Of a stretch of DNA of 64,000 nucleotides, positions 1,534 to 62,086 are shown one piece after another; position 1 is the first letter of the stretch, and each line of letters begins with the position of its first letter. The notes beneath the pieces were generated by a model, which was not told where the DNA came from, made no database searches, and saw nothing but the letters and a program-made list of their open reading frames with translations. The stretch lies in the IMG/VR virus record IMGVR_UViG_3300035698_029839, positions 62,001-126,000 of that record; one strand, written 5' to 3'. The position numbers and the translations under genes were made by a program.

Positions 1534-2088
1534 TACGAGAGTTAATAAATTATATGTTACAGATAAAAAAGAAATTAGATTTAGTTCTAATAGTAAAAAT
1601 AAAAAAATAGAGTTTCTAGTCAAAGAAGCACTTATTGGTTATGCAGGTGTGATTGTGGAAAGGAATTATGGGTTAGGTCGGATGTGTTAGCAAAAAGAAA
1701 AAGTTGTGGTTGTGATAAACGTGCTGGAGAACTTGGAGATGGAGTAATGGGGGCTGTTTATGCTAGTTATAAAGGAAATGCCAAAAGAAGAAGTATTGAG
1801 TTTGATATATCTAAAGAATTTTTTAAAGAGATAACTAGTAAACTTTGTTATTATTGTGGCTCTCTTCCAAGTAATTATAGGTGTATAAAAAATTATTATG
1901 GAGATTTTAAATATAATGGTATTGATAGAATAGATAATAATATTGGTTATGAAAAAAGTAATTGTGTTCCGTGTTGTAAAAAATGCAATAGAGCGAAGGA
2001 TATAATGTCTAAAGATGAATTTGTAAGTTGGGTTAAAAATATATATAATAATTTGAAAAATAATGGAGTTTTAAATGAAGATAACTGA
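1508..2088 (+). pseudogene. HNH-type endonuclease split by a frameshift at an A7 tract (1601-1607)
   Basis: N-terminus MGRVKDISNTRVNKLYV is in one frame. The -1 frame after 1603 reads NRVSSQRSTYWLCRCDCGKELWVRSDVLAKRKSCGC and continues into CYYCG...GIDRIDNNIGY...NCVPCCKKCNRAK. Joined product is 193 aa. Confidence 0.8.
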
Positions 2089-2593
2089 TAAATATATATT
2101 TTTTTATGGTGGAGTTTTTTCACAATGGGCAGGGAAAAGTTTTATATTAGATGGGAGTCTTTTTGGCACAGCGGAGCAGTATATGATGTATAGAAAAGCT
2201 AAACTTTTTGGGGATCATGAATCTGCCAAAAAGATATGGAGTTCTGGAGATCCTGCAAAACAAAAAGCATTGGGAAGAAAAGTAAAAAATTTCGATAAAG
2301 ATAAATGGGAAGCAATAGCAAAGACTGTTGTTTATGAAGCAAACTGGGCTAAATTTACTCAACATAAAGATTTGCAAAAGCAATTGTTAGATACAGATGA
2401 AAAAATAATAGTTGAGGCAAGTCCTTCGGATTGTATATGGGGAGTTGGTTTGTGGGCTAATGATCCTAAGATATTAGATTCTAAAAATTGGAGAGGAACT
2501 AATTGGTTGGGTGAGGCTATAATGGAAGTAAGAAGTGTTTTAAAACAATTAAATAGTACGAATGATAATCCAGATTTAAAAATAACGTGTTAA
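2075..2593 (+). CDS. NADAR family protein (YbiA/COG3236-like)
   Basis: FSQW, TAEQYMMYRKAKLFGD, GRKVKNFD, EASPSDCIWGVG and GTNWLGEAIMEVR motifs. Confidence 0.92.
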   Translation: MKITDKYIFFYGGVFSQWAGKSFILDGSLFGTAEQYMMYRKAKLFGDHESAKKIWSSGDPAKQKALGRKVKNFDKDKWEAIAKTVVYEANWAKFTQHKDLQKQLLDTDEKIIVEASPSDCIWGVGLWANDPKILDSKNWRGTNWLGEAIMEVRSVLKQLNSTNDNPDLKITC

Positions 2594-2605
2594 AGGAGAA
2601 ATAAA

Positions 2606-2875
2606 ATGGCAGATAGTCAAAAAGAGACAGAGAAAGTAACAGAGAAAAAGAAAAAAGTTGGGATAGAGATTCATGGCCCTACAATTTTACATGGGAAGAG
2701 AGCTAGATTCATGAGGGGCGAGAATGAGGTAGTAGGTGTTTTGTTAGCAAATGATCATCAAGTTAATTCTGATAAATTTGTATTTCAATTTGTTGATAAA
2801 AATGGGACAACATGCGTTAGTCCTCTTACGAGTGATGAATTAAAGAATATTGATGAAGCATTAGTGGATTTTTAA
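2606..2875 (+). CDS. Hypothetical protein
   Basis: SD AAGGAG 7-8 nt upstream; 89 aa. Confidence 0.65.
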   Translation: MADSQKETEKVTEKKKKVGIEIHGPTILHGKRARFMRGENEVVGVLLANDHQVNSDKFVFQFVDKNGTTCVSPLTSDELKNIDEALVDF

Positions 2876-2876
2876 T

Positions 2877-3260
2877 ATGGATAAGAATGTTCTTGATATT
2901 TTTATTTTAGAAGATAGCCCAGAAAGGATAAAGTGGTTCCAGCAATTTTTTGGAGATAGTAATTTAGTTCATACTAAAGATGTTAAAACTGCTTGCGATG
3001 AGTTAAGAACTAAAGATTATGATCTTGTATTTTTAGACAGAGATCTTGGTCATCCCAAAGAGAATGGGGAGGATGTTGCATGGGTTATGAAGGAAGAACA
3101 ATTATGCAAGAATGCTTGTGTTATTGTTCATACAGTTAATCCTCGCGGACAAAGAAATATTAAAAAATATTTGGGAGAGTATCATAAGAATTTCCATATT
3201 ATTAATTTTACCCAATTGAGAAAAATGAAAAGATCTGATTTTCAAATATCAGGTTCTTAA
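2877..3260 (+). CDS. Stand-alone receiver (CheY-like) domain, cyclic-phosphate-processing REC type
   Basis: IFILEDSPERIKWF, YDLVFLDRDLG (family LDHDLG) and VIVHTVNPRG motifs. Confidence 0.75.
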   Translation: MDKNVLDIFILEDSPERIKWFQQFFGDSNLVHTKDVKTACDELRTKDYDLVFLDRDLGHPKENGEDVAWVMKEEQLCKNACVIVHTVNPRGQRNIKKYLGEYHKNFHIINFTQLRKMKRSDFQISGS

Positions 3261-54406: not shown

Positions 54407-55480
54407 ATGAAAAAAGTTTTTGTTTCTGGATGTTATGATATTATTCATGGAGGACACATCCAGTTTTTTAAGGATGCTAAAAAATATGGAGATTTTTTAA
54501 TTGTTAATATAGCTTCTGATGAAGTTATTAAATTAGCTAAAAATAAAAGACCTTCATTACCAGTTGAGCATAGGATATCAATTTTAGAATCATTAGAAAT
54601 AGTGGATAAAGTTTATGTTAGTAGCGATGTTGATAGTGTGTTAGATTTTAAAACTAATTTTATAAATGAGAAACCTGATTTACTAGTGTTTTCTGGAGAT
54701 GAAAAAAACAAAGATATTAAGAAAGAGTTTTGTAAAGAAGTTGGATCAGAGTGTGTCCAGATAGATAAGATTAATCCTTTTAATTATGATTCATCAATTT
54801 CTACTTCTAAAATAATTAATCTGGTTAAAAGACCAAAGAAAATACCTTTAAGAGTAGATTTTGCTGGCGGTTGGTTAGATGTCCCTTCTTTATCAAGACA
54901 AAATGCTTTTATAGTTAATTGTACAATTAATAAATTTATGGATGAAGATTGTGAGTTCGATCCAGGAGCTGGTGTAGGAGGATCTGCTGCTTACTGGCTT
55001 TATAAGGGACAGAATACATTAGAAAGTGAGTTAAAGAATGGAGCTGGATGGCAAGATCCTGCTGTTATTACAGAAACAGGATTATGTGTGTGGAGGTCTG
55101 GTATGATTCCTATTTTGGAATTAAAAATAAATCCTGATTTCCTAAATAATAAAATGGCTCTTTTATATGATAGAACTCCTCATGATACTCCCTCACTAAG
55201 AGAAATAGAAAGAGATTATAAATTGATTGAAGAAGCAGGATCTAAAGCTTATGAGGCAGTTATTAACAAAAATTTATTTCTTCTTAATGATGCGGTCGAT
55301 ATATCTTATAAAGCTCAATTAAAAGAGGGAATGAATAAATTAAAATCGTATGGAGAGATGAGTAAAAAATATTGTGGTTCAGGATGGGGAGGATGTTCTT
55401 TATATGTTTTTTATAATCATGAAAGAGTTCCTGACAATATGATAAAAATACAACCATATATAAGAAATATTGACGAATAG
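54407..55480 (+). CDS. Cytidylyltransferase (TagD/RfaE-like) fused to a GHMP sugar-kinase domain
   Basis: GCYDIIHGGH and SISTSKI, then PLRVDFAGGWLD, PGAGVGGSAA, GWQD and CGSGWGG. Confidence 0.85.
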   Translation: MKKVFVSGCYDIIHGGHIQFFKDAKKYGDFLIVNIASDEVIKLAKNKRPSLPVEHRISILESLEIVDKVYVSSDVDSVLDFKTNFINEKPDLLVFSGDEKNKDIKKEFCKEVGSECVQIDKINPFNYDSSISTSKIINLVKRPKKIPLRVDFAGGWLDVPSLSRQNAFIVNCTINKFMDEDCEFDPGAGVGGSAAYWLYKGQNTLESELKNGAGWQDPAVITETGLCVWRSGMIPILELKINPDFLNNKMALLYDRTPHDTPSLREIERDYKLIEEAGSKAYEAVINKNLFLLNDAVDISYKAQLKEGMNKLKSYGEMSKKYCGSGWGGCSLYVFYNHERVPDNMIKIQPYIRNIDE

Positions 55481-55509
55481 ATTATAAGTTAAAAGATACA
55501 GGAGATAAT

Positions 55510-56328
55510 ATGACCAAAGTAGGAATTATAGGTTATGGAATTATAGGAAAAGCAGTATTAAAAATGTTTAAGGACAAAGTAGAACTTTGTGTTCATGATA
55601 TAAATATTTCTACTGATGATAAAATATATTTAAATATGGTTGGAATAGAATATTCTGATAAGGAAGAAATTAATAGTTGTGATATTGCTTTTGTTTGTGT
55701 CCCTACCCCACATAATAAGTATGATGGCTTGGATATGTCTATTGTTGAAAGTGTTATAAAAGAGTTTAATCCAGGAATGTTTGTTATATGTTCTGCTTTA
55801 CAACCTGGCACAGCAGATATTTTAATGAATAAATATGGAAAGAAAATAGTTGTACAGCCAGAATATTTTGGAGAGACAACGAATCATCCTCTTACTAATT
55901 TATCTCAAAATCCATTTATGATTTTAGGCGGTAAAAATGAAGATGTTGATGAAGTCATAAAACTTTATCAAAAAGTTTATAATGCTAATATCAGAATTAG
56001 AAAGGTGACAGCTTTAGAAGCTGAAGTGATTAAACTTTCTGAGAATAGAGCTATAGCATATAAGGTTGCTCAATGTCAAGAATTGTATGATGCTTGTAAA
56101 AATTCTAAGGTAGATTATGAAACTATTAGACAAGCTGTTTATGGGGATGACCCAAGATTTAATTTATGGTGGACTTTTGTTTATGAAGATAACAGAGGTA
56201 TGAATAGTAAGTGTATTCCTAAGGATGTTTACGGGTGGTATAGGTGGGCAGATGATTCAGGAGTTAATCCACGATTAACTGAAGCCTTATTAGATTATAA
56301 CCACAGTTTAGTAAAGAAAGATGAGTAA
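55510..56328 (+). CDS. UDP-glucose/GDP-mannose dehydrogenase family protein (short, intein-free)
   Basis: GIIGYGIIG, CVPTP and divergent catalytic GMNSKCIPKD; lacks the C-terminal UDP-binding domain. Confidence 0.82.
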   Translation: MTKVGIIGYGIIGKAVLKMFKDKVELCVHDINISTDDKIYLNMVGIEYSDKEEINSCDIAFVCVPTPHNKYDGLDMSIVESVIKEFNPGMFVICSALQPGTADILMNKYGKKIVVQPEYFGETTNHPLTNLSQNPFMILGGKNEDVDEVIKLYQKVYNANIRIRKVTALEAEVIKLSENRAIAYKVAQCQELYDACKNSKVDYETIRQAVYGDDPRFNLWWTFVYEDNRGMNSKCIPKDVYGWYRWADDSGVNPRLTEALLDYNHSLVKKDE

Positions 56329-57421
56329 TATGAAAGATACTATTGGAGTAATTGGTTGCGGTTTTGTGGGGAAGGCAGTTGTAAAAGGTTTCGAGCAATT
56401 TGCAGATGTTAAAATCTATGATACGGATGAAAAAAAATCAATACATGATTTTAAAGAAGTAGTAAATTGTGATTTTGTTTTTATATGTTTGCCTACACCA
56501 ATGATATCATCAGAAGGAGGAAGAGCTAATTTATCAATACTTGAGAAATGTATGGAAGATATTAGTAATGTAGAAAATAGAAATAAAGATTCTATTTATG
56601 TTATTAAATCGACAGTCCCAATTGGGACAACAAAAAGATTTGTATCTCAGTATAAAAATTTGCGTATAGTTCATAATCCAGAATTTCTAACTGCACGTTC
56701 TGCTATAATAGATTTTATTTGTCCTGCAAGAAATATTGTTGGTGCAGATTGGGGACGTGATGGCAAACCTGTTCAGGATTTATTAATAGATAGATTTCCA
56801 GGTACTCGTTGTATAGCTATGACATCTGAAGAATCAGAAACGGTTAAATATATGGCAAATTCTTTTTTAGCAACAAAGGTTATATTTTTCAATGAAATGA
56901 GATTGCTAGTTGATAAGAAAAATTTAGACTGGGATAGAGTCATAAGTGGAGTTATGTCAGATGGTAGGATAGGAACTTCTCATTATCAAGTACCAGGACA
57001 TGATGGGGACAGGGGTTTTGGTGGATTGTGTGTTTTACCTGATGCTAAAGTTAGTGTGAGTAGTAATTTTTGTTACTTCCCAGAATTTTTAAATGATGAA
57101 GATAGTAGCTATATGAGAAGTCATGCTTATTCTAATAGGGAAATAAGAATAGAAGATTTATATGACGAATTTAAAGATAGAAAGAAATTTCATTTTTTGT
57201 TAATACAATCTTGCAATGATAAAATAGAAGAAATTGAAGATAAATATATCAGAGATGTGACTGTTAGGGATATAGATGAAGAAATTTATTGTTTTGAAAC
57301 TTCAAATGGTTTGTTTCGTTGCACATCTAATCATTTAATGCCTGTCGAAAGACAAGGAAAAATAATTATTATTCCTGCAAAAGAAATAAAGGAAACGGAT
57401 TTGCTTTTCTCGAAAGTATAA
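56321..57421 (+). CDS. ugd: UDP-glucose 6-dehydrogenase N-extein (236 aa) plus split intein N-fragment (130 aa)
   Basis: GCGFVG, KSTVP, NPEFL, KYMANSFLATK and GFGGL, then intein block A CVLPDAKV from 57029 and block B CTSNHLMPV. Confidence 0.92.
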   Translation: MSNMKDTIGVIGCGFVGKAVVKGFEQFADVKIYDTDEKKSIHDFKEVVNCDFVFICLPTPMISSEGGRANLSILEKCMEDISNVENRNKDSIYVIKSTVPIGTTKRFVSQYKNLRIVHNPEFLTARSAIIDFICPARNIVGADWGRDGKPVQDLLIDRFPGTRCIAMTSEESETVKYMANSFLATKVIFFNEMRLLVDKKNLDWDRVISGVMSDGRIGTSHYQVPGHDGDRGFGGLCVLPDAKVSVSSNFCYFPEFLNDEDSSYMRSHAYSNREIRIEDLYDEFKDRKKFHFLLIQSCNDKIEEIEDKYIRDVTVRDIDEEIYCFETSNGLFRCTSNHLMPVERQGKIIIIPAKEIKETDLLFSKV

Positions 57422-58364
57422 TGGATAAACAGGTTTCTTAAAATACTGGATAGAAAATGTTAATAGAATATTTATCAGAAAAAATTAATACAAAAACGAA
57501 TATAAGGTTCAAATGTGATCAGTGTGGAAACTTATATATTAGGAATAATAAACCATATATAAATATGAAAAAAAGTATTTATTATGATAAGGATTATTGT
57601 TGTTTATGCTGGAGAAAAATTTTAAATAATCGTCCTGAATATAAAAAGAATATGAGTATATCTATACGGAAGATGTATGAAGATCATCCAGAGATAAGAA
57701 GTAAAATTTCTAAAACTTTGAAAAAAAATGGGGCAAATATAGGGAATAAAAATGGGATGAAACAAATTAAAGCAAGAATAAAGGCATCGATGACAAGAAA
57801 AAAAAAGTTTTTAGATCCAGTTTTTAGAAAAGCTCATTCTGATATGATTAAAAAGGCGTGGGCAGATGGTAAATTTGATGGAGTTAGAGTTGGGCAGTGT
57901 AAATGGCATGAATATAAACATTCTAATGGGAATGTTTATAAAGTTCAGGGAACATGGGAGCTAGCATTTATAAAATGGTTAGATGAAAATAATTTGAAAT
58001 TTAAATGCCATAGAGGAAGAATTCCATACAGAATTAAAGGGGAAAATAGAAATTATTATCCAGATTTTTGGGTTGATAAATGGGATGCTTTTATCGATGT
58101 AAAGTGTAGATATTTTTATGATATAAGTAAGAATAAGTTTAAAGCTATAAAAAAAAGTAATCCAAATATAAATATAAAAATTTTATTTAAAAAAGATTTA
58201 TTAAAATTAGGAGTTGTTTTGTGAAAAAAATAAAAATTAATAAAATAAAAAAAGAAAGCTATAAGGGTAAAGTTTATAATCTTGAATTAGAAACAGAAAA
58301 TTTTGATACTGATGGAGATGATTTGTTCTGGATAGAGCAGGAAACAGGAATTGTTACTCATAAT
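57029..58364 (+). mobile_element. Split intein plus free-standing endonuclease (fractured-gene element)
   Basis: IntN 57029-57421, endonuclease 57457-58224 and IntC 58221-58364, each in a different reading frame. Confidence 0.88.
57457..58224 (+). CDS. Free-standing homing endonuclease: NUMOD3-like basic region plus PD-(D/E)xK (TnsA-N-like) nuclease domain
   Basis: CDQCG...CCLC; EIRSKISKTLK; VQGTWELAFIKWLD, IPY and YYPDFWV...FIDVK motifs. Confidence 0.8.
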   Translation: MLIEYLSEKINTKTNIRFKCDQCGNLYIRNNKPYINMKKSIYYDKDYCCLCWRKILNNRPEYKKNMSISIRKMYEDHPEIRSKISKTLKKNGANIGNKNGMKQIKARIKASMTRKKKFLDPVFRKAHSDMIKKAWADGKFDGVRVGQCKWHEYKHSNGNVYKVQGTWELAFIKWLDENNLKFKCHRGRIPYRIKGENRNYYPDFWVDKWDAFIDVKCRYFYDISKNKFKAIKKSNPNINIKILFKKDLLKLGVVL

Positions 58365-58523
58365 TGCTTTAGTAAAGATATTAATTCTTTAATTGATACC
58401 ATGGAAAAGGAAGGTCTTGATCCATTGGTTTTAAAAGCAGTATGGGAACAAAATAAAAGAGTTAGAAAAAAATGGGACTGGGCCGATGAGTCTTCAGCCG
58501 TTTTAGGGGAGGAAAAGTCATGA
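58221..58523 (+). CDS. ugd: Split intein C-fragment (48 aa) plus dehydrogenase C-extein (52 aa)
   Basis: GTG start with SD AGGAG at 58209-58213; block F KVYNLELE; block G GIVTHN, then CFSKDINSL. Confidence 0.92.
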   Translation: MKKIKINKIKKESYKGKVYNLELETENFDTDGDDLFWIEQETGIVTHNCFSKDINSLIDTMEKEGLDPLVLKAVWEQNKRVRKKWDWADESSAVLGEEKS

Positions 58524-59251
58524 GTGTTGTAAGGGGGGTTATATTAGCAGGTGGACATGGGAAGAGACTTTATCCTATGACTAAGGTTATAAATAAGCAT
58601 TTATTGAATGTTTATAATAAACCCATGATTTATTACCCGATAGAGACTATGATTAATGCTGGGATTGATCAAATTATGATAGTAACAGGGGGAAATAATG
58701 CAGGTAGTTTTTTGGAGCTTATTGGGAATGGGGAAGAGTTCGGATTAAAAGAAATGCACTATTCTTATCAAAAAGGAGCAGGAGGTATAGCGGAAGCTTT
58801 ATCTTTAGCAGAGAATTTTACGGCTGGAGATAAGTTTGTAGTTATTTTAGGAGATAATATACTAGAAAAAAGTATTAAGCCTTATGTGGATAATTTTAAA
58901 TGTCAACAAGGAGGAGCAAAAATACTTTTAACTAAGTCTATGACTCCAGAACGTTTTGGGGTAGCGGAGATTGACGATAATAATAATGTTACTTGTATAG
59001 TTGAGAAGCCACGAGAACCTAAAAGTGACAGTATAGTTATTGGCGTATATATGTATGATGGAGAAGTTTTCGAAGCTATTAAACAACAACAACGTTCTGA
59101 CAGAGGAGAATTAGAGATTACTGATGTGAATAATTATTATATAGAAAAGAGTAAGCTAACAAGTGATTTTATTGATGGATGGTGGACAGACGCTGGGACT
59201 ATTCCTTCTCTATTTAAAGCCAATGCGTTACTAAAGGATAATAATGAGTAA
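58520..59251 (+). CDS. rmlA: Glucose-1-phosphate thymidylyltransferase (short form)
   Basis: ILAGGHGKRLYPMT, EKP, SDRGELEITD and WWTDAGT motifs. Confidence 0.93.
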   Translation: MSVVRGVILAGGHGKRLYPMTKVINKHLLNVYNKPMIYYPIETMINAGIDQIMIVTGGNNAGSFLELIGNGEEFGLKEMHYSYQKGAGGIAEALSLAENFTAGDKFVVILGDNILEKSIKPYVDNFKCQQGGAKILLTKSMTPERFGVAEIDDNNNVTCIVEKPREPKSDSIVIGVYMYDGEVFEAIKQQQRSDRGELEITDVNNYYIEKSKLTSDFIDGWWTDAGTIPSLFKANALLKDNNE

Positions 59252-60068
59252 TATAATTTTTGGAAACGGTTTTATAGGTAATATTTTAAATAATAAGTTA
59301 GATGATTATGAATTATCAGATTTAAACCCATTATTTTATGGAACTCTTTGTAAGGCATTAGATGTACATAAACCAGAAGTTATTATTAATTGTATTGGTA
59401 AAACAGGAAGACCCAATATAGATTGGTGCGAGAATAATAAAGAAGATACAATATTATCCAATATCGCCGTACCATCAATACTTGCATCTGAATGTTCTAA
59501 AAGAGGTATATATTTTGTCCATATGGGAAGCGGTTGTATTTATTCTGATAGGGACGGAGAGAATAATTTTTCTGAAGATGATGAACCAAATTTCTATAAA
59601 TATCAGACTTACGCAAGAACTAAAATATTAGCTGAAAAAATTGTTAAAAATGTACCCTCTTTGCAGGTGCGTATTAGAATGCCTATTTGTTCTTATCCTC
59701 ATGATAGAAATTTAATAACAAAATTATCAAAGTATGAAAAAGTAATTGATATTAAAAATTCTATGACAGTTATAGAGGATTTTTTACCTGTGTTTAAGAC
59801 ACTTGTAGATAATAGGGCTACGGGTATATATAATGTTGTGAATGAAGGGGCTATATCTGCTTATGAGATTATGAAGTTGTATGCAGAAATTGTAGATTTA
59901 TCATATAGGGTGTCTTTATTAAGTAAAGAAGAGTTAAATAGGATAACAGTTGGTGAAAGATCCAATTGTATTATTTTGTCGGAAAAGATTAAAAAATATG
60001 GAATATCTATGCCCAATATAAGAGAATCTATAGAGAAAGTTCTTTATGAATATAAGGAAAATTTATGA
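59244..60068 (+). CDS. rmlD: NRS/ER-type NDP-4-keto-6-deoxyglucose 3,5-epimerase/4-reductase (RmlD-like)
   Basis: GNGFIG, GKTGRPNIDWCE, GSGCIY, RIRMPI and RSNC motifs. Confidence 0.85.
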   Translation: MSNIIFGNGFIGNILNNKLDDYELSDLNPLFYGTLCKALDVHKPEVIINCIGKTGRPNIDWCENNKEDTILSNIAVPSILASECSKRGIYFVHMGSGCIYSDRDGENNFSEDDEPNFYKYQTYARTKILAEKIVKNVPSLQVRIRMPICSYPHDRNLITKLSKYEKVIDIKNSMTVIEDFLPVFKTLVDNRATGIYNVVNEGAISAYEIMKLYAEIVDLSYRVSLLSKEELNRITVGERSNCIILSEKIKKYGISMPNIRESIEKVLYEYKENL

Positions 60069-61009
60069 ATATATTAGTTACGGGCGGTGCGGGTTTTATA
60101 GGCTCTAATTTTATAGAAATACTTTTAGAAAAAACAAATCATAATATTGTAGTTTATGATTGTTTAACATATGCTGGTAATATAAATAATATTAAAGAAT
60201 TTATAGAAGATCGAAGATTAACTTTTGTAGAAGGCGATATACGAAATGGAAGTGTTGTTGATTGTTCTATAAAGAGTACTGATGTGGTTGTTAACTTTGC
60301 AGCGGAGACTCATGTTGATAATAGTATTTCATCTTGTAAGGATTTCTTAACTACCAATATTATTGGGACTGCTGTGTTGGCTGATTCAGCTATAAAATAT
60401 AAGGTTAAGAAATTTGTTCAAATATCTACAGATGAGGTTTATGGAGCTATTAATTACCCACATTCTTCTATAGAAACAGATGTATTAAAACCTCAGAATC
60501 CATATAGTGCTTCTAAGGCTTCTGCTGATATGTTGTTACTTTCTTATTATAACACTTATAAATTTCCAGTTGTTATAACAAGGTGCACTAATAATTATGG
60601 GAAGAAACAATATCCTGAGAAAATTATACCTTTATTTATATCAAATTTAATGAATGATAAAAAGGTTCCTGTCTATGGAGATGGGCTACAAATAAGAGAC
60701 TGGATACATGTAAGTGATCATTGCAATGCTATTCTTAATGTTATGGAAAAAGGAAGGGTTGGGGAGGTATATAATATAGGTTCTTCCAATGAAATTAAAA
60801 ATATTGATTTAACAAAAATTTTAATAAGTAAAATGGAAAAAGATGAAACATCTATAAAATATGTAGAAGATCGTCTTGGACACGATAAAAGATATTCTTT
60901 AAATACCGAAAAAATAAAAAATGAGCTAGAATGGAAATCTGTAGTTAATTTTGAAGAAGGAATTGATTCTACTGTCAAATGGTACAAAGATGCATTTCAA
61001 CAGAAATAA
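60065..61009 (+). CDS. rmlB: dTDP-glucose 4,6-dehydratase
   Basis: GGAGFIGSN, TYAGN, AAETHVDNS, STDEVYG, PYSASK and DRLGHDKRY motifs. Confidence 0.95.
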   Translation: MNILVTGGAGFIGSNFIEILLEKTNHNIVVYDCLTYAGNINNIKEFIEDRRLTFVEGDIRNGSVVDCSIKSTDVVVNFAAETHVDNSISSCKDFLTTNIIGTAVLADSAIKYKVKKFVQISTDEVYGAINYPHSSIETDVLKPQNPYSASKASADMLLLSYYNTYKFPVVITRCTNNYGKKQYPEKIIPLFISNLMNDKKVPVYGDGLQIRDWIHVSDHCNAILNVMEKGRVGEVYNIGSSNEIKNIDLTKILISKMEKDETSIKYVEDRLGHDKRYSLNTEKIKNELEWKSVVNFEEGIDSTVKWYKDAFQQK

Positions 61010-61829: not shown

Positions 61830-62086
61830 TGTATGGAGTAGATTTTAATAACCAATTAGCCGATTATTTGTTAGATGATAACAGAAAAATTTCTAAGGCA
61901 CATTTGAATAGCGTCTGCAAAATAGAGCAGAAGGATAAAACTTGTAGGTATATATCTTTATCAAAAATAGGATATGTGTGCATGAAGAAAAGTCCAGCCA
62001 AAGAAAAATTAGACGAAATGGTAAAAGGTGAAAATATGATTGCACGATCAGATAACTGCGAAGGACTGGGAGATATGCATGGCTAA
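61829..62086 (+). CDS. Small Cys-containing hypothetical protein
   Basis: VCKIEQ...CRYI...YVCMK...DNCEG; TAATG coupling. Confidence 0.65.
   Translation: MYGVDFNNQLADYLLDDNRKISKAHLNSVCKIEQKDKTCRYISLSKIGYVCMKKSPAKEKLDEMVKGENMIARSDNCEGLGDMHG

Follow-up and report, generated by a model that had tools for sequence, protein, structure and literature searches.

Fractured genes, as described by Dassa 2009 (PMC2677866), consist of two open reading frames (ORFs) on the same strand, which carry at their inner ends the N- and C-terminal halves of an intein (IntN and IntC) and which are separated by a short spacer and a free-standing endonuclease gene overlapping the start of the downstream frame. The hosts reported in that work are genes of DNA synthesis and repair, namely gp41, IMPDH, DnaE, NrdA, NrdJ, ligase and terminase, and the resident nucleases belong to the GIY-YIG and Vsr-like (EDxHD) families only. 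Here we analyze a stretch of 64,000 nucleotides (the window) that covers positions 62,001 to 126,000 of the IMG/VR virus record IMGVR_UViG_3300035698_029839 (297,710 bp, completeness estimate 62%) and contains a fractured gene of another kind: a ugd-like gene for a short UGDH-like nucleotide-sugar dehydrogenase, interrupted by a split mini-intein which encloses a gene of 255 codons (57457-58224, + strand, ATG start, TGA stop). This gene probably encodes a sequence-directed DNA endonuclease belonging to a homing element housed in the split mini-intein, the activity being predicted from its family, its modeled fold and its distribution. Inteins of UGDH genes are known in general; the literature covered, which left subscription journals mostly outside, contained neither a fractured ugd nor a T7-endonuclease-I/TnsA-type nuclease in any fractured gene. 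The locus therefore adds to a known arrangement both a host gene and a nuclease family that are new there.

The resemblance to the fractured genes already described extends to details. All parts lie on the + strand between 56321 and 58523, in the order N-part ORF, spacer, nuclease ORF and C-part ORF; the N-extein and IntN share one ORF of 366 aa (56321-57421), and IntC and the C-extein share another of 100 aa (58221-58523). The insert separating the exteins measures 1336 bp and holds a single gene besides the flanking intein halves, no further coding-strand ORF of at least 40 aa being found inside it. Its spacer has 35 nt, compared with 30-65 nt in the related loci that we tabulated and 27-51 nt in the fractured genes of Dassa 2009 (PMC2677866), which also have in common with our locus the single strand, the IntN end, the overlap of the endonuclease ORF with the IntC start and the phage or viral metagenomic setting. 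The overlap reads GTGA in the window (58221-58224) and ATGA at the homologous position of all seven other tabulated loci, and a 4-nt overlap between nuclease and IntC is repeated in further IMG/VR loci. As in the earlier fractured genes, several ugd relatives have a small hairpin before the nuclease gene, here followed by a T-run just 3' of the IntN stop and with stem letters that differ by locus. The spacer of the window shows no obvious hairpin or T-run, and has a TGGATA direct repeat in its place (spacers compared: L001, L002, L005, L018, L020, L007, L039 and window 57422-57456); in L007, L027 and L039 a TATAAATA-like box lies ahead of the nuclease ATG. Scanning 56000-59000 for promoters and terminators returned zero terminators and 10 promoter-like sites, fewer than the shuffle mean of 17. 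Near-identical pieces of the locus are present in salt-lake metagenome runs, and contig pieces from four runs, available as contigs only, at low depth, and possibly including the source sample of the window itself, span the extein/IntN, IntN/spacer/nuclease and nuclease/IntC joints with 0 differing letters; an assembly artifact is therefore unlikely. The virus is a large salt-lake phage, a call that rests on gene content (DnaE, UvrD and Topo IA genes, operon-like same-strand packing, PhoH and the like in related contigs) and on its Uroviricota look-alikes.

The 255-aa frame is not a chance ORF, in view of its many homologues and of a ratio of nonsynonymous to synonymous substitution (dN/dS) between 0.08 and 0.20 in seven nuclease gene pairs of moderate divergence (five nested in inteins, one from an incomplete fractured locus and one free-standing); it is a working gene under purifying selection. 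A word-indexed search yielded 120 homologues of similar length, and an exhaustive search 1170 representative clusters at E<=1e-3. Across the family alignment of 54 homologues the mean column identity is 29%, three residues never vary (E168, D203 and K216), P202 and the cysteines C20, C23 and C48 recur in at least 90% of the sequences, and position 214 is D or E in the sequences shown, giving the signature E...(P)D...(D/E)xK of the PD-(D/E)xK superfamily. The closest solved relative by sequence is T7 endonuclease I (gp3; 1m0d, 1fzr, 2pfj; PF05367), which is matched in 1m0d with E 2e-5 by the single sequence and 7e-12 by the family profile; its catalytic residues E20, D55, E65 and K67 align with E168, D203, D214 and K216 of the nuclease, so that all four are matched. 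Within the family, Phage_endo_I (PF05367) is recognized in 24 of the 54 relatives, DUF7487 (PF24308) in 38 of them at E<0.01, and NUMOD3 in two as well as in the more distant nuclease of locus L088. The window protein has no NUMOD3 match in the Pfam scan and no GIY-YIG match, its matches being T7 endonuclease I, TnsA and the uncharacterized DUF7487, of which it is a borderline member; PHROG endonuclease families are matched as well. That it belongs to neither the GIY-YIG nor the Vsr-like group widens the fractured-gene arrangement rather than excluding the locus from it.

The predicted structure points to the same superfamily. An AlphaFold2 model from the single sequence was unusable, with a predicted local distance difference test (pLDDT) of 36; we used instead a model built on the 54-sequence alignment, which reaches pLDDT 94.4. 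Its best match among structural representatives is TnsA (1t0f_A), with Z 9.4 and a root-mean-square deviation (rmsd) of 3.1 Å over 124 residues, spanning model residues 124-249 at 17% sequence identity, and the next matches are I-Bth0305I (Z 6.5), Bax1 (6.1), Vsr (6.0), VRR-NUC (5.7) and Hjc (4.1), all of PD-(D/E)xK fold; the model thus has the alpha/beta core typical of restriction endonucleases. Foldseek places TnsA and T7 endonuclease I on top, both only at ~8e-3. The chains of the latter superpose poorly (rmsd ~21 Å in Foldseek; Z 3.6 over 57 residues) because T7 endonuclease I is domain-swapped, whereas the nuclease model packs its first helix on its own domain as TnsA does. Judged by sequence and model together, the catalytic domain is a canonical PD-(D/E)xK domain, T7-endonuclease-I-like in sequence and TnsA-like as a monomer fold. 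In front of it the model shows an N-terminal module formed by a beta-hairpin plus a helix, and then helices at residues 60-76, 78-90, 104-118 and 121-136. Viral look-alikes of the same two-part build carry names such as NUMOD3, C2H2 or ROS/MucR zinc finger, endonuclease I, TnsA-N and putative homing endonuclease, and in structural look-alike clusters of the ESM Atlas NUMOD3 occurs in 12-30% of members. A prediction of a two-copy complex of residues 140-255 scored 0.02, too weak to count either way.

A first-pass annotation of the window, made by a model from the letters alone, had already described the 255-aa ORF at its correct position together with the Cys pairs (C20/C23 and C48/C51), the YYPDF (P202, D203) and IDVK (D214, K216) motifs, a basic helical region, which corresponds to the four modeled helices in the region of residues 59-138, the GTGA coupling to IntC, and the flanking UGDH N-part/IntN and IntC/C-part; all of these are present, and the nuclease fold that it expected in residues ~150-255 is recovered in the model. 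Its label of TnsA-N-like is fair for the fold and less so for the sequence, which is closest to T7 endonuclease I. Its premise that the endonucleases of fractured genes are Vsr-like EDxHD enzymes was incomplete, since GIY-YIG enzymes are found there too (Dassa 2009, PMC2677866).

Comparison with characterized enzymes helps to define what is distinctive in this nuclease. T7 endonuclease I is a structure-selective junction resolvase consisting of one domain-swapped domain of 149 aa (2pfj_A) without an extra DNA-binding module, whereas the window protein has ~140 additional N-terminal residues; the N-terminal catalytic domain of Tn7 TnsA (1t0f, 1f1z), in turn, is the best fold match, but the nuclease lacks the C-terminal domain of TnsA and occurs in another genetic setting. 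The Vsr-like EDxHD homing endonucleases such as I-Bth0305I (PMC3239194; 3r3p) similarly combine a DNA-binding N-part with a restriction-endonuclease-like C-terminal domain and reside in fractured genes and group I introns, but their active site is E-D-x-H-D with a histidine, in contrast to E...PD...(D/E)xK here. PD-(D/E)xK enzymes are counted among the six families of homing endonucleases in a 2018 paper (PMC6083498), I-Ssp6803I having been the first of them found to act in homing (Dassa 2009, PMC2677866). I-Ssp6803I shares the catalytic superfamily with our nuclease, but its gene lies in a group I intron and it has no zinc-ribbon/helical module; it is not among the sequence or fold matches of the nuclease. 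To our knowledge, it is the sole characterized homing endonuclease with a PD-(D/E)xK site.

The intein itself retains the residues required for splicing, namely Cys1, the TxxH of block B, the terminal HN and the +1 Cys. Across the window and seven further loci its IntN conserves Cys1, TxxH and an end of the form ..KETDxLFSK, and its IntC the pattern ..VYNLEL..DDLFW..TGIVTHN; the identity of IntN is 62% with P0274 and 44% with the intein of P0383, which is contiguous, and the Pfam Intein_splicing profile is weak in the window IntN and reaches 33 bits in its L029 relative, below the cut-off of 35.8 bits. Trans-splicing of IntN and IntC would make the dehydrogenase whole again. Both exteins align in order with intein-less alleles of ~285 aa (282-287 aa), in which the site reads ..GFGG(T/S/V)-CFPKDINxL.., and the half-sites given in the first-pass annotation lie at 57014-57028 and 58365-58379. 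The cysteine following the intein, in the context C-F-x-K-D or C-x-x-K-D, is the catalytic nucleophile in UGDH enzymes; since the intein directly precedes it, only precise loss of the intein would be tolerated. The short UGDH-like form is very common in viral metagenomes and is found in tandem with a paralogue of 264-272 aa, both in the window (55510-56328/56321-58523) and in L016 (3204-4849).

The alleles of this gene are most informative for the evolution of the element. With the N-extein as query we found 3649 relatives at E<=1e-20, and read the allele state in the best 120 rows, the window included: 109 are empty, nine have the intein and two are truncated, which answers the earlier suggestion to look for empty alleles in relatives. 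The empty alleles are uninterrupted genes of ~280-290 aa reading G-F-G-G-T-C-F-P-K-D across the site, and they include the nearest extein relative (P0264, 80% identity) and the next non-fragment relatives at 73-74% identity; a locus search with the single N-extein sequence gave two loci. On a contig of 350 kb (L016) the empty allele stands in a tandem paralogue pair like that of the window, but here neither gene is interrupted. Occupancy does not follow the extein tree, on which the nine occupied rows need 8 state changes against a shuffled mean of 8.8, with at least four changes forced by branches of support >=95. Moreover, the similarity of the elements is uncoupled from that of their hosts: the closest element to that of the window is in L018, where the extein is 35% identical, yet IntN is 54%, the nuclease 66% and IntC 71% identical, and loci with exteins 50-54% identical to the window have elements less similar than this. 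A further allele, P0383 (L017:835-2184, on a 32.9-kb contig), has the same intein in contiguous form within a protein of 449 aa and without the nuclease, a link of five residues joining IntN and IntC exactly at the position of the nuclease gene in the split form. With occupied and empty alleles coexisting and scattered in this way, the comparative data support an element of homing type.

The distribution of the nuclease genes adds to this picture. All seven homologues sampled first-hand (47-62% identity, on contigs of 5-304 kb) show the same fractured dehydrogenase layout, including the 4-nt overlap. Searching IMG/VR with the family alignment yielded 80 nuclease loci, of which 33, plus four with incomplete ORF calls, have the nuclease between split-intein halves, 16 have it free-standing directly 3' of an intact, intein-less ugd-like gene, and 30 have it elsewhere. 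The nested loci reside in nucleotide-sugar dehydrogenase genes in 35 cases, of two kinds whose C-exteins start mainly with CFPKD (a few with CLPKD) or with CHPRD, and in an unrelated host in two (L088/L089). In the nuclease tree all ugd-associated genes form one clade with 99% support in the SH-like approximate likelihood ratio test (SH-aLRT), and this clade is linked exclusively to ugd-type genes; within it the free-standing and nested forms interleave at well-supported nodes, and the tree, being unrooted, gives no direction of change between them. The nucleases of L088/L089 fall outside the clade, are enclosed by another split intein, and match ROS_MucR, NUMOD3 and, with 32.4 bits and thus above its cut-off, Phage_endo_I. 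The free-standing layout resembles that of phage homing endonucleases encoded next to the gene that they target. One of these, F-CphI, reportedly cuts at an intron insertion site (Zeng, Bonocora and Shub). Its gene lies 3' of psbA in cyanophage S-PM2; it differs from the nucleases here in its Endo VII motif, and the element interrupting psbA is a group I intron instead of an intein (PMC6083498). As side observations, the free-standing sister genes (L050-L054, L058, L063, L066-L068) are often followed by a gene of ~275 aa, whose 288-aa homologue in L050 matches Pfam PDDEXK_1 (Cas4/RecB-like). Since L050-L054 (nuclease at L050:2228-2998) keep this PDDEXK_1-type neighbor without a ugd upstream, the free-standing form may be anchored to the junction with the neighbor gene and not to ugd alone. 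Immediately 5' of the fractured ugd, L004 (2163-2906) and L011 (1052-1822) have a gene of 247-256 aa with NUMOD3 and a weak TnsA-like-N match, a second putative free-standing nuclease flanking the fractured gene; in L033 and L034 (240-2372) the N-part of the fractured dehydrogenase is 710 aa long, its NAD-binding and central domains being separated by an insert of ~390 aa that may be a second intervening element of this gene.

In functional terms, these features raise a question: How could an element placed immediately before the catalytic cysteine codon of its host both persist and spread? The explanation that we favor is that the free-standing nuclease between the intein halves, with its zinc ribbon and helical DNA-binding part joined to a T7-endonuclease-I/TnsA-type PD-(D/E)xK domain, would be expressed with the two halves as three same-strand ORFs. 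The C-part would be made with or after the nuclease, because the stop codon of the nuclease and the start codon of IntC share letters and the 3' end of the nuclease gene contains a ribosome-binding box; the AGGAG letters of this box would fit coupled translation of IntC from the nuclease transcript. IntN and IntC may then associate and trans-splice to produce an intact dehydrogenase of ~288 aa, and since an intact enzyme would result, the host gene would not be lost. Upon co-infection with a relative having an uninterrupted ugd, the nuclease would cut the ugd of the relative within the conserved active-site sequence or close to it, and recombinational repair from the occupied allele would copy intein and nuclease into the cut allele. 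Cleavage activity, target site and the order of evolutionary steps are all predictions in this scheme. The first-pass annotation had proposed much the same homing into intein-less ugd alleles, a view in keeping with how numerous the empty alleles are, how scattered the occupied ones are and how poorly elements and exteins agree in similarity; its further idea that the nuclease invaded the intein and split it agrees with the contiguous, nuclease-less intein of P0383/L017, although the change between the two forms may have been an insertion or a deletion.

Several observations weigh against this interpretation and have to be set beside it. Foldseek against the PDB returns nothing at E<=1e-3, and the window protein falls below the curated Pfam cut-offs for both Phage_endo_I (E 1.5e-5, 25.1 bits against 29.1) and DUF7487 (22.5 bits against 27), although for PF05367 the homology holds because 24 of 54 relatives match and the family profile reaches 1m0d. 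A PD-(D/E)xK monomer has one active site, and a double-strand break through a dimer is only putative here. The host, at ~285 aa, lacks the usual C-terminal UDP-binding domain (PF03720), so that its dehydrogenase role is putative as well. Moreover, the four low-depth salt-lake runs contain no joint 57028-58365 and no near-identical empty allele (four other joints were disregarded, their sides having only 20-26 letters). Finally, the scattered occupancy could also be explained if the element was gained once, long ago, and then lost precisely many times, and the trees are quick and unrooted.

These points leave room for other readings. The nuclease might home not into the joined exteins but into a nuclease-less contiguous mini-intein, at its present position, with the intein itself spreading only by hitch-hiking or vertical descent; the target predicted in the first-pass annotation, the joined exteins, would in that case be mistaken. 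Such an allele exists, and it is common for modular phage endonucleases to cut some way off their insertion point, as established for I-TevI. We consider this reading unlikely, for contiguous alleles seem rare (one found versus 109 empty in the best 120), the scattering of intein plus nuclease on the extein tree, with similarities uncoupled from those of the exteins, requires that the whole element enters empty alleles, and the sister nucleases beside intact intein-less ugd genes suggest recognition of ugd rather than intein DNA. Alternatively, the element could be immobile and the nuclease kept for another job, such as resolving junctions and branched DNA or cutting the DNA of competitor phages, after one ancient gain and repeated precise losses. 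The homology of the catalytic domain with a junction-resolving enzyme would be in keeping with this, purifying selection shows that there is a function and not which one, the counts of changes on the tree do not separate gain from loss, and the failure to see a near-identical empty allele in the same samples is compatible too. Yet T7 endonuclease I consists of that one domain, whereas the family here adds the zinc ribbon and helical region as in site-specific modular phage endonucleases; a general resolvase would need neither the tie to one gene family nor the two arrangements in which the clade is found; more than 100 independent exact losses in front of a catalytic Cys are less economical than transfer; and the similarity of the elements does not follow that of the exteins. 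On balance this second reading appears quite improbable.

A role as the TnsA-like component of a Tn7-like transposon, of which the insert would be part, is suggested by the best structural match and by the Tn7_TnsA-like_N profile, matched by four of the 54 relatives. It is excluded for practical purposes: the insert is a 1336-bp single-gene segment directly flanked by intein halves, the structural match is limited to TnsA residues 9-169, leaving out the C-terminal domain, the sequence is closer to T7 endonuclease I, and neither terminal inverted repeats nor target-site duplications nor partner transposase genes are seen. Having no other coding-strand ORF of at least 40 aa, the insert has no room for a TnsB/TnsC/TnsD-like gene (these families themselves were not searched for).

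Fractured genes are a proposed intermediate between ordinary inteins, those that bear endonucleases and those that are naturally split, and the fastest split inteins in protein engineering (gp41-1, NrdJ-1, IMPDH-1) came from them. With the present locus the arrangement is seen in a metabolic enzyme, whose catalytic cysteine comes right after the intein, and with a nuclease of a third family, which has a canonical PD-(D/E)xK site. Because a single gene family offers natural alleles that are empty, intein-only, with the nuclease beside or with the nuclease inside, target choice and the order of events become directly testable. We tentatively suggest, without holding it for established, that zinc-ribbon T7-endonuclease-I-like nucleases (DUF7487/Phage_endo_I with NUMOD3) may form an uncharacterized and widespread family of phage homing endonucleases that colonized split inteins more than once, their nested members being found in the two kinds of ugd-type genes and in the unrelated host of L088, and that the ugd system may hold in present-day genomes every stage of the proposed route of intein colonization and gene fracture by an endonuclease, from the empty allele through the contiguous mini-intein and the nuclease beside the gene to the nested form. 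Were this the case, the long-standing model of intein colonization could be tested with natural parts. The split intein, with its Cys1/Cys+1 chemistry, N-part of 130 aa and C-part of 48 aa, is together with its variants a candidate orthogonal tool for trans-splicing.

Table 1. Features of the fractured ugd-like locus, in coordinates of the window
Feature	Position	Strand	Basis
Tandem paralogue (short UGDH-like gene) without intein, 272 aa, site N-S-K-C-I-P-K-D	55510-56328	+	Context only
N-extein of short UGDH-like nucleotide-sugar dehydrogenase, 236 aa, ends G-F-G-G-L	56321-57028	+	PF03721 68 bits, PF00984 49 bits, phrog_9148
IntN, 130 aa, Cys1, starts C-V-L-P, block B T-S-N-H, TAA stop	57029-57421	+	Alignment with seven other loci
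Non-coding spacer, 35 nt, IntN stop to nuclease ATG	57422-57456	+	Sequence, compared with related loci
Cys4 zinc-ribbon module, nuclease residues 1-58 (C20, C23, C48, C51)	57457-57630	+	Conservation and model
Basic helical region, nuclease residues 59-138, presumed DNA-binding module, NUMOD3-like in some relatives	57631-57870	+	Model
PD-(D/E)xK catalytic domain, nuclease residues 139-255 plus TGA	57871-58224	+	T7 endonuclease I match, conservation, fold
Catalytic codons E168; D203; D214; K216	57958-57960; 58063-58065; 58096-58098; 58102-58104	+	T7 endonuclease I alignment
AGGAG Shine-Dalgarno-like box, 7 nt 5' of IntC GTG, within nuclease 3' end	58209-58213	+	Sequence
IntC, 48 aa, ends I-V-T-H-N; GTG start overlaps nuclease TGA	58221-58364	+	Conservation in eight loci
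C-extein, 52 aa plus stop, starts C-F-S-K-D at +1 Cys	58365-58523	+	PF00984 tail match; colinear with empty alleles

The surroundings of the locus deserve a final comment. The virus record is unusually rich in inteins, with at least five in 298 kb. A second fractured gene, that of DnaE (DNA polymerase III alpha), lies outside the window at ~34.2-37.5 kb of the record (G000:C1; pieces L102:2-502, 524-1384, 1377-1625 and 1618-3258). Between its intein halves are an ORF of 286 aa with a C2H2 zinc finger (phrog_22677), for which no match to a nuclease family was established, and an ORF of 82 aa; a further, contiguous intein is present later in the same C-part. Contiguous, too, is the intein of a UvrD-type helicase at ~46.8-49.8 kb (G000:C1; L098:748-3732), and just beyond the 3' end of the window a type IA topoisomerase has an intein with a LAGLIDADG endonuclease domain (L099:481-3249). 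Around the fractured ugd, the window has a long same-strand block of sugar-nucleotide genes (54407-61009), with a heptose kinase/adenylyltransferase-like gene and, by ORF reading, nucleotidyltransferase, RmlD-like and dTDP-glucose dehydratase-like genes. Such an island of glycan synthesis is an unusual place for a homing element, the usual hosts being genes of DNA metabolism.

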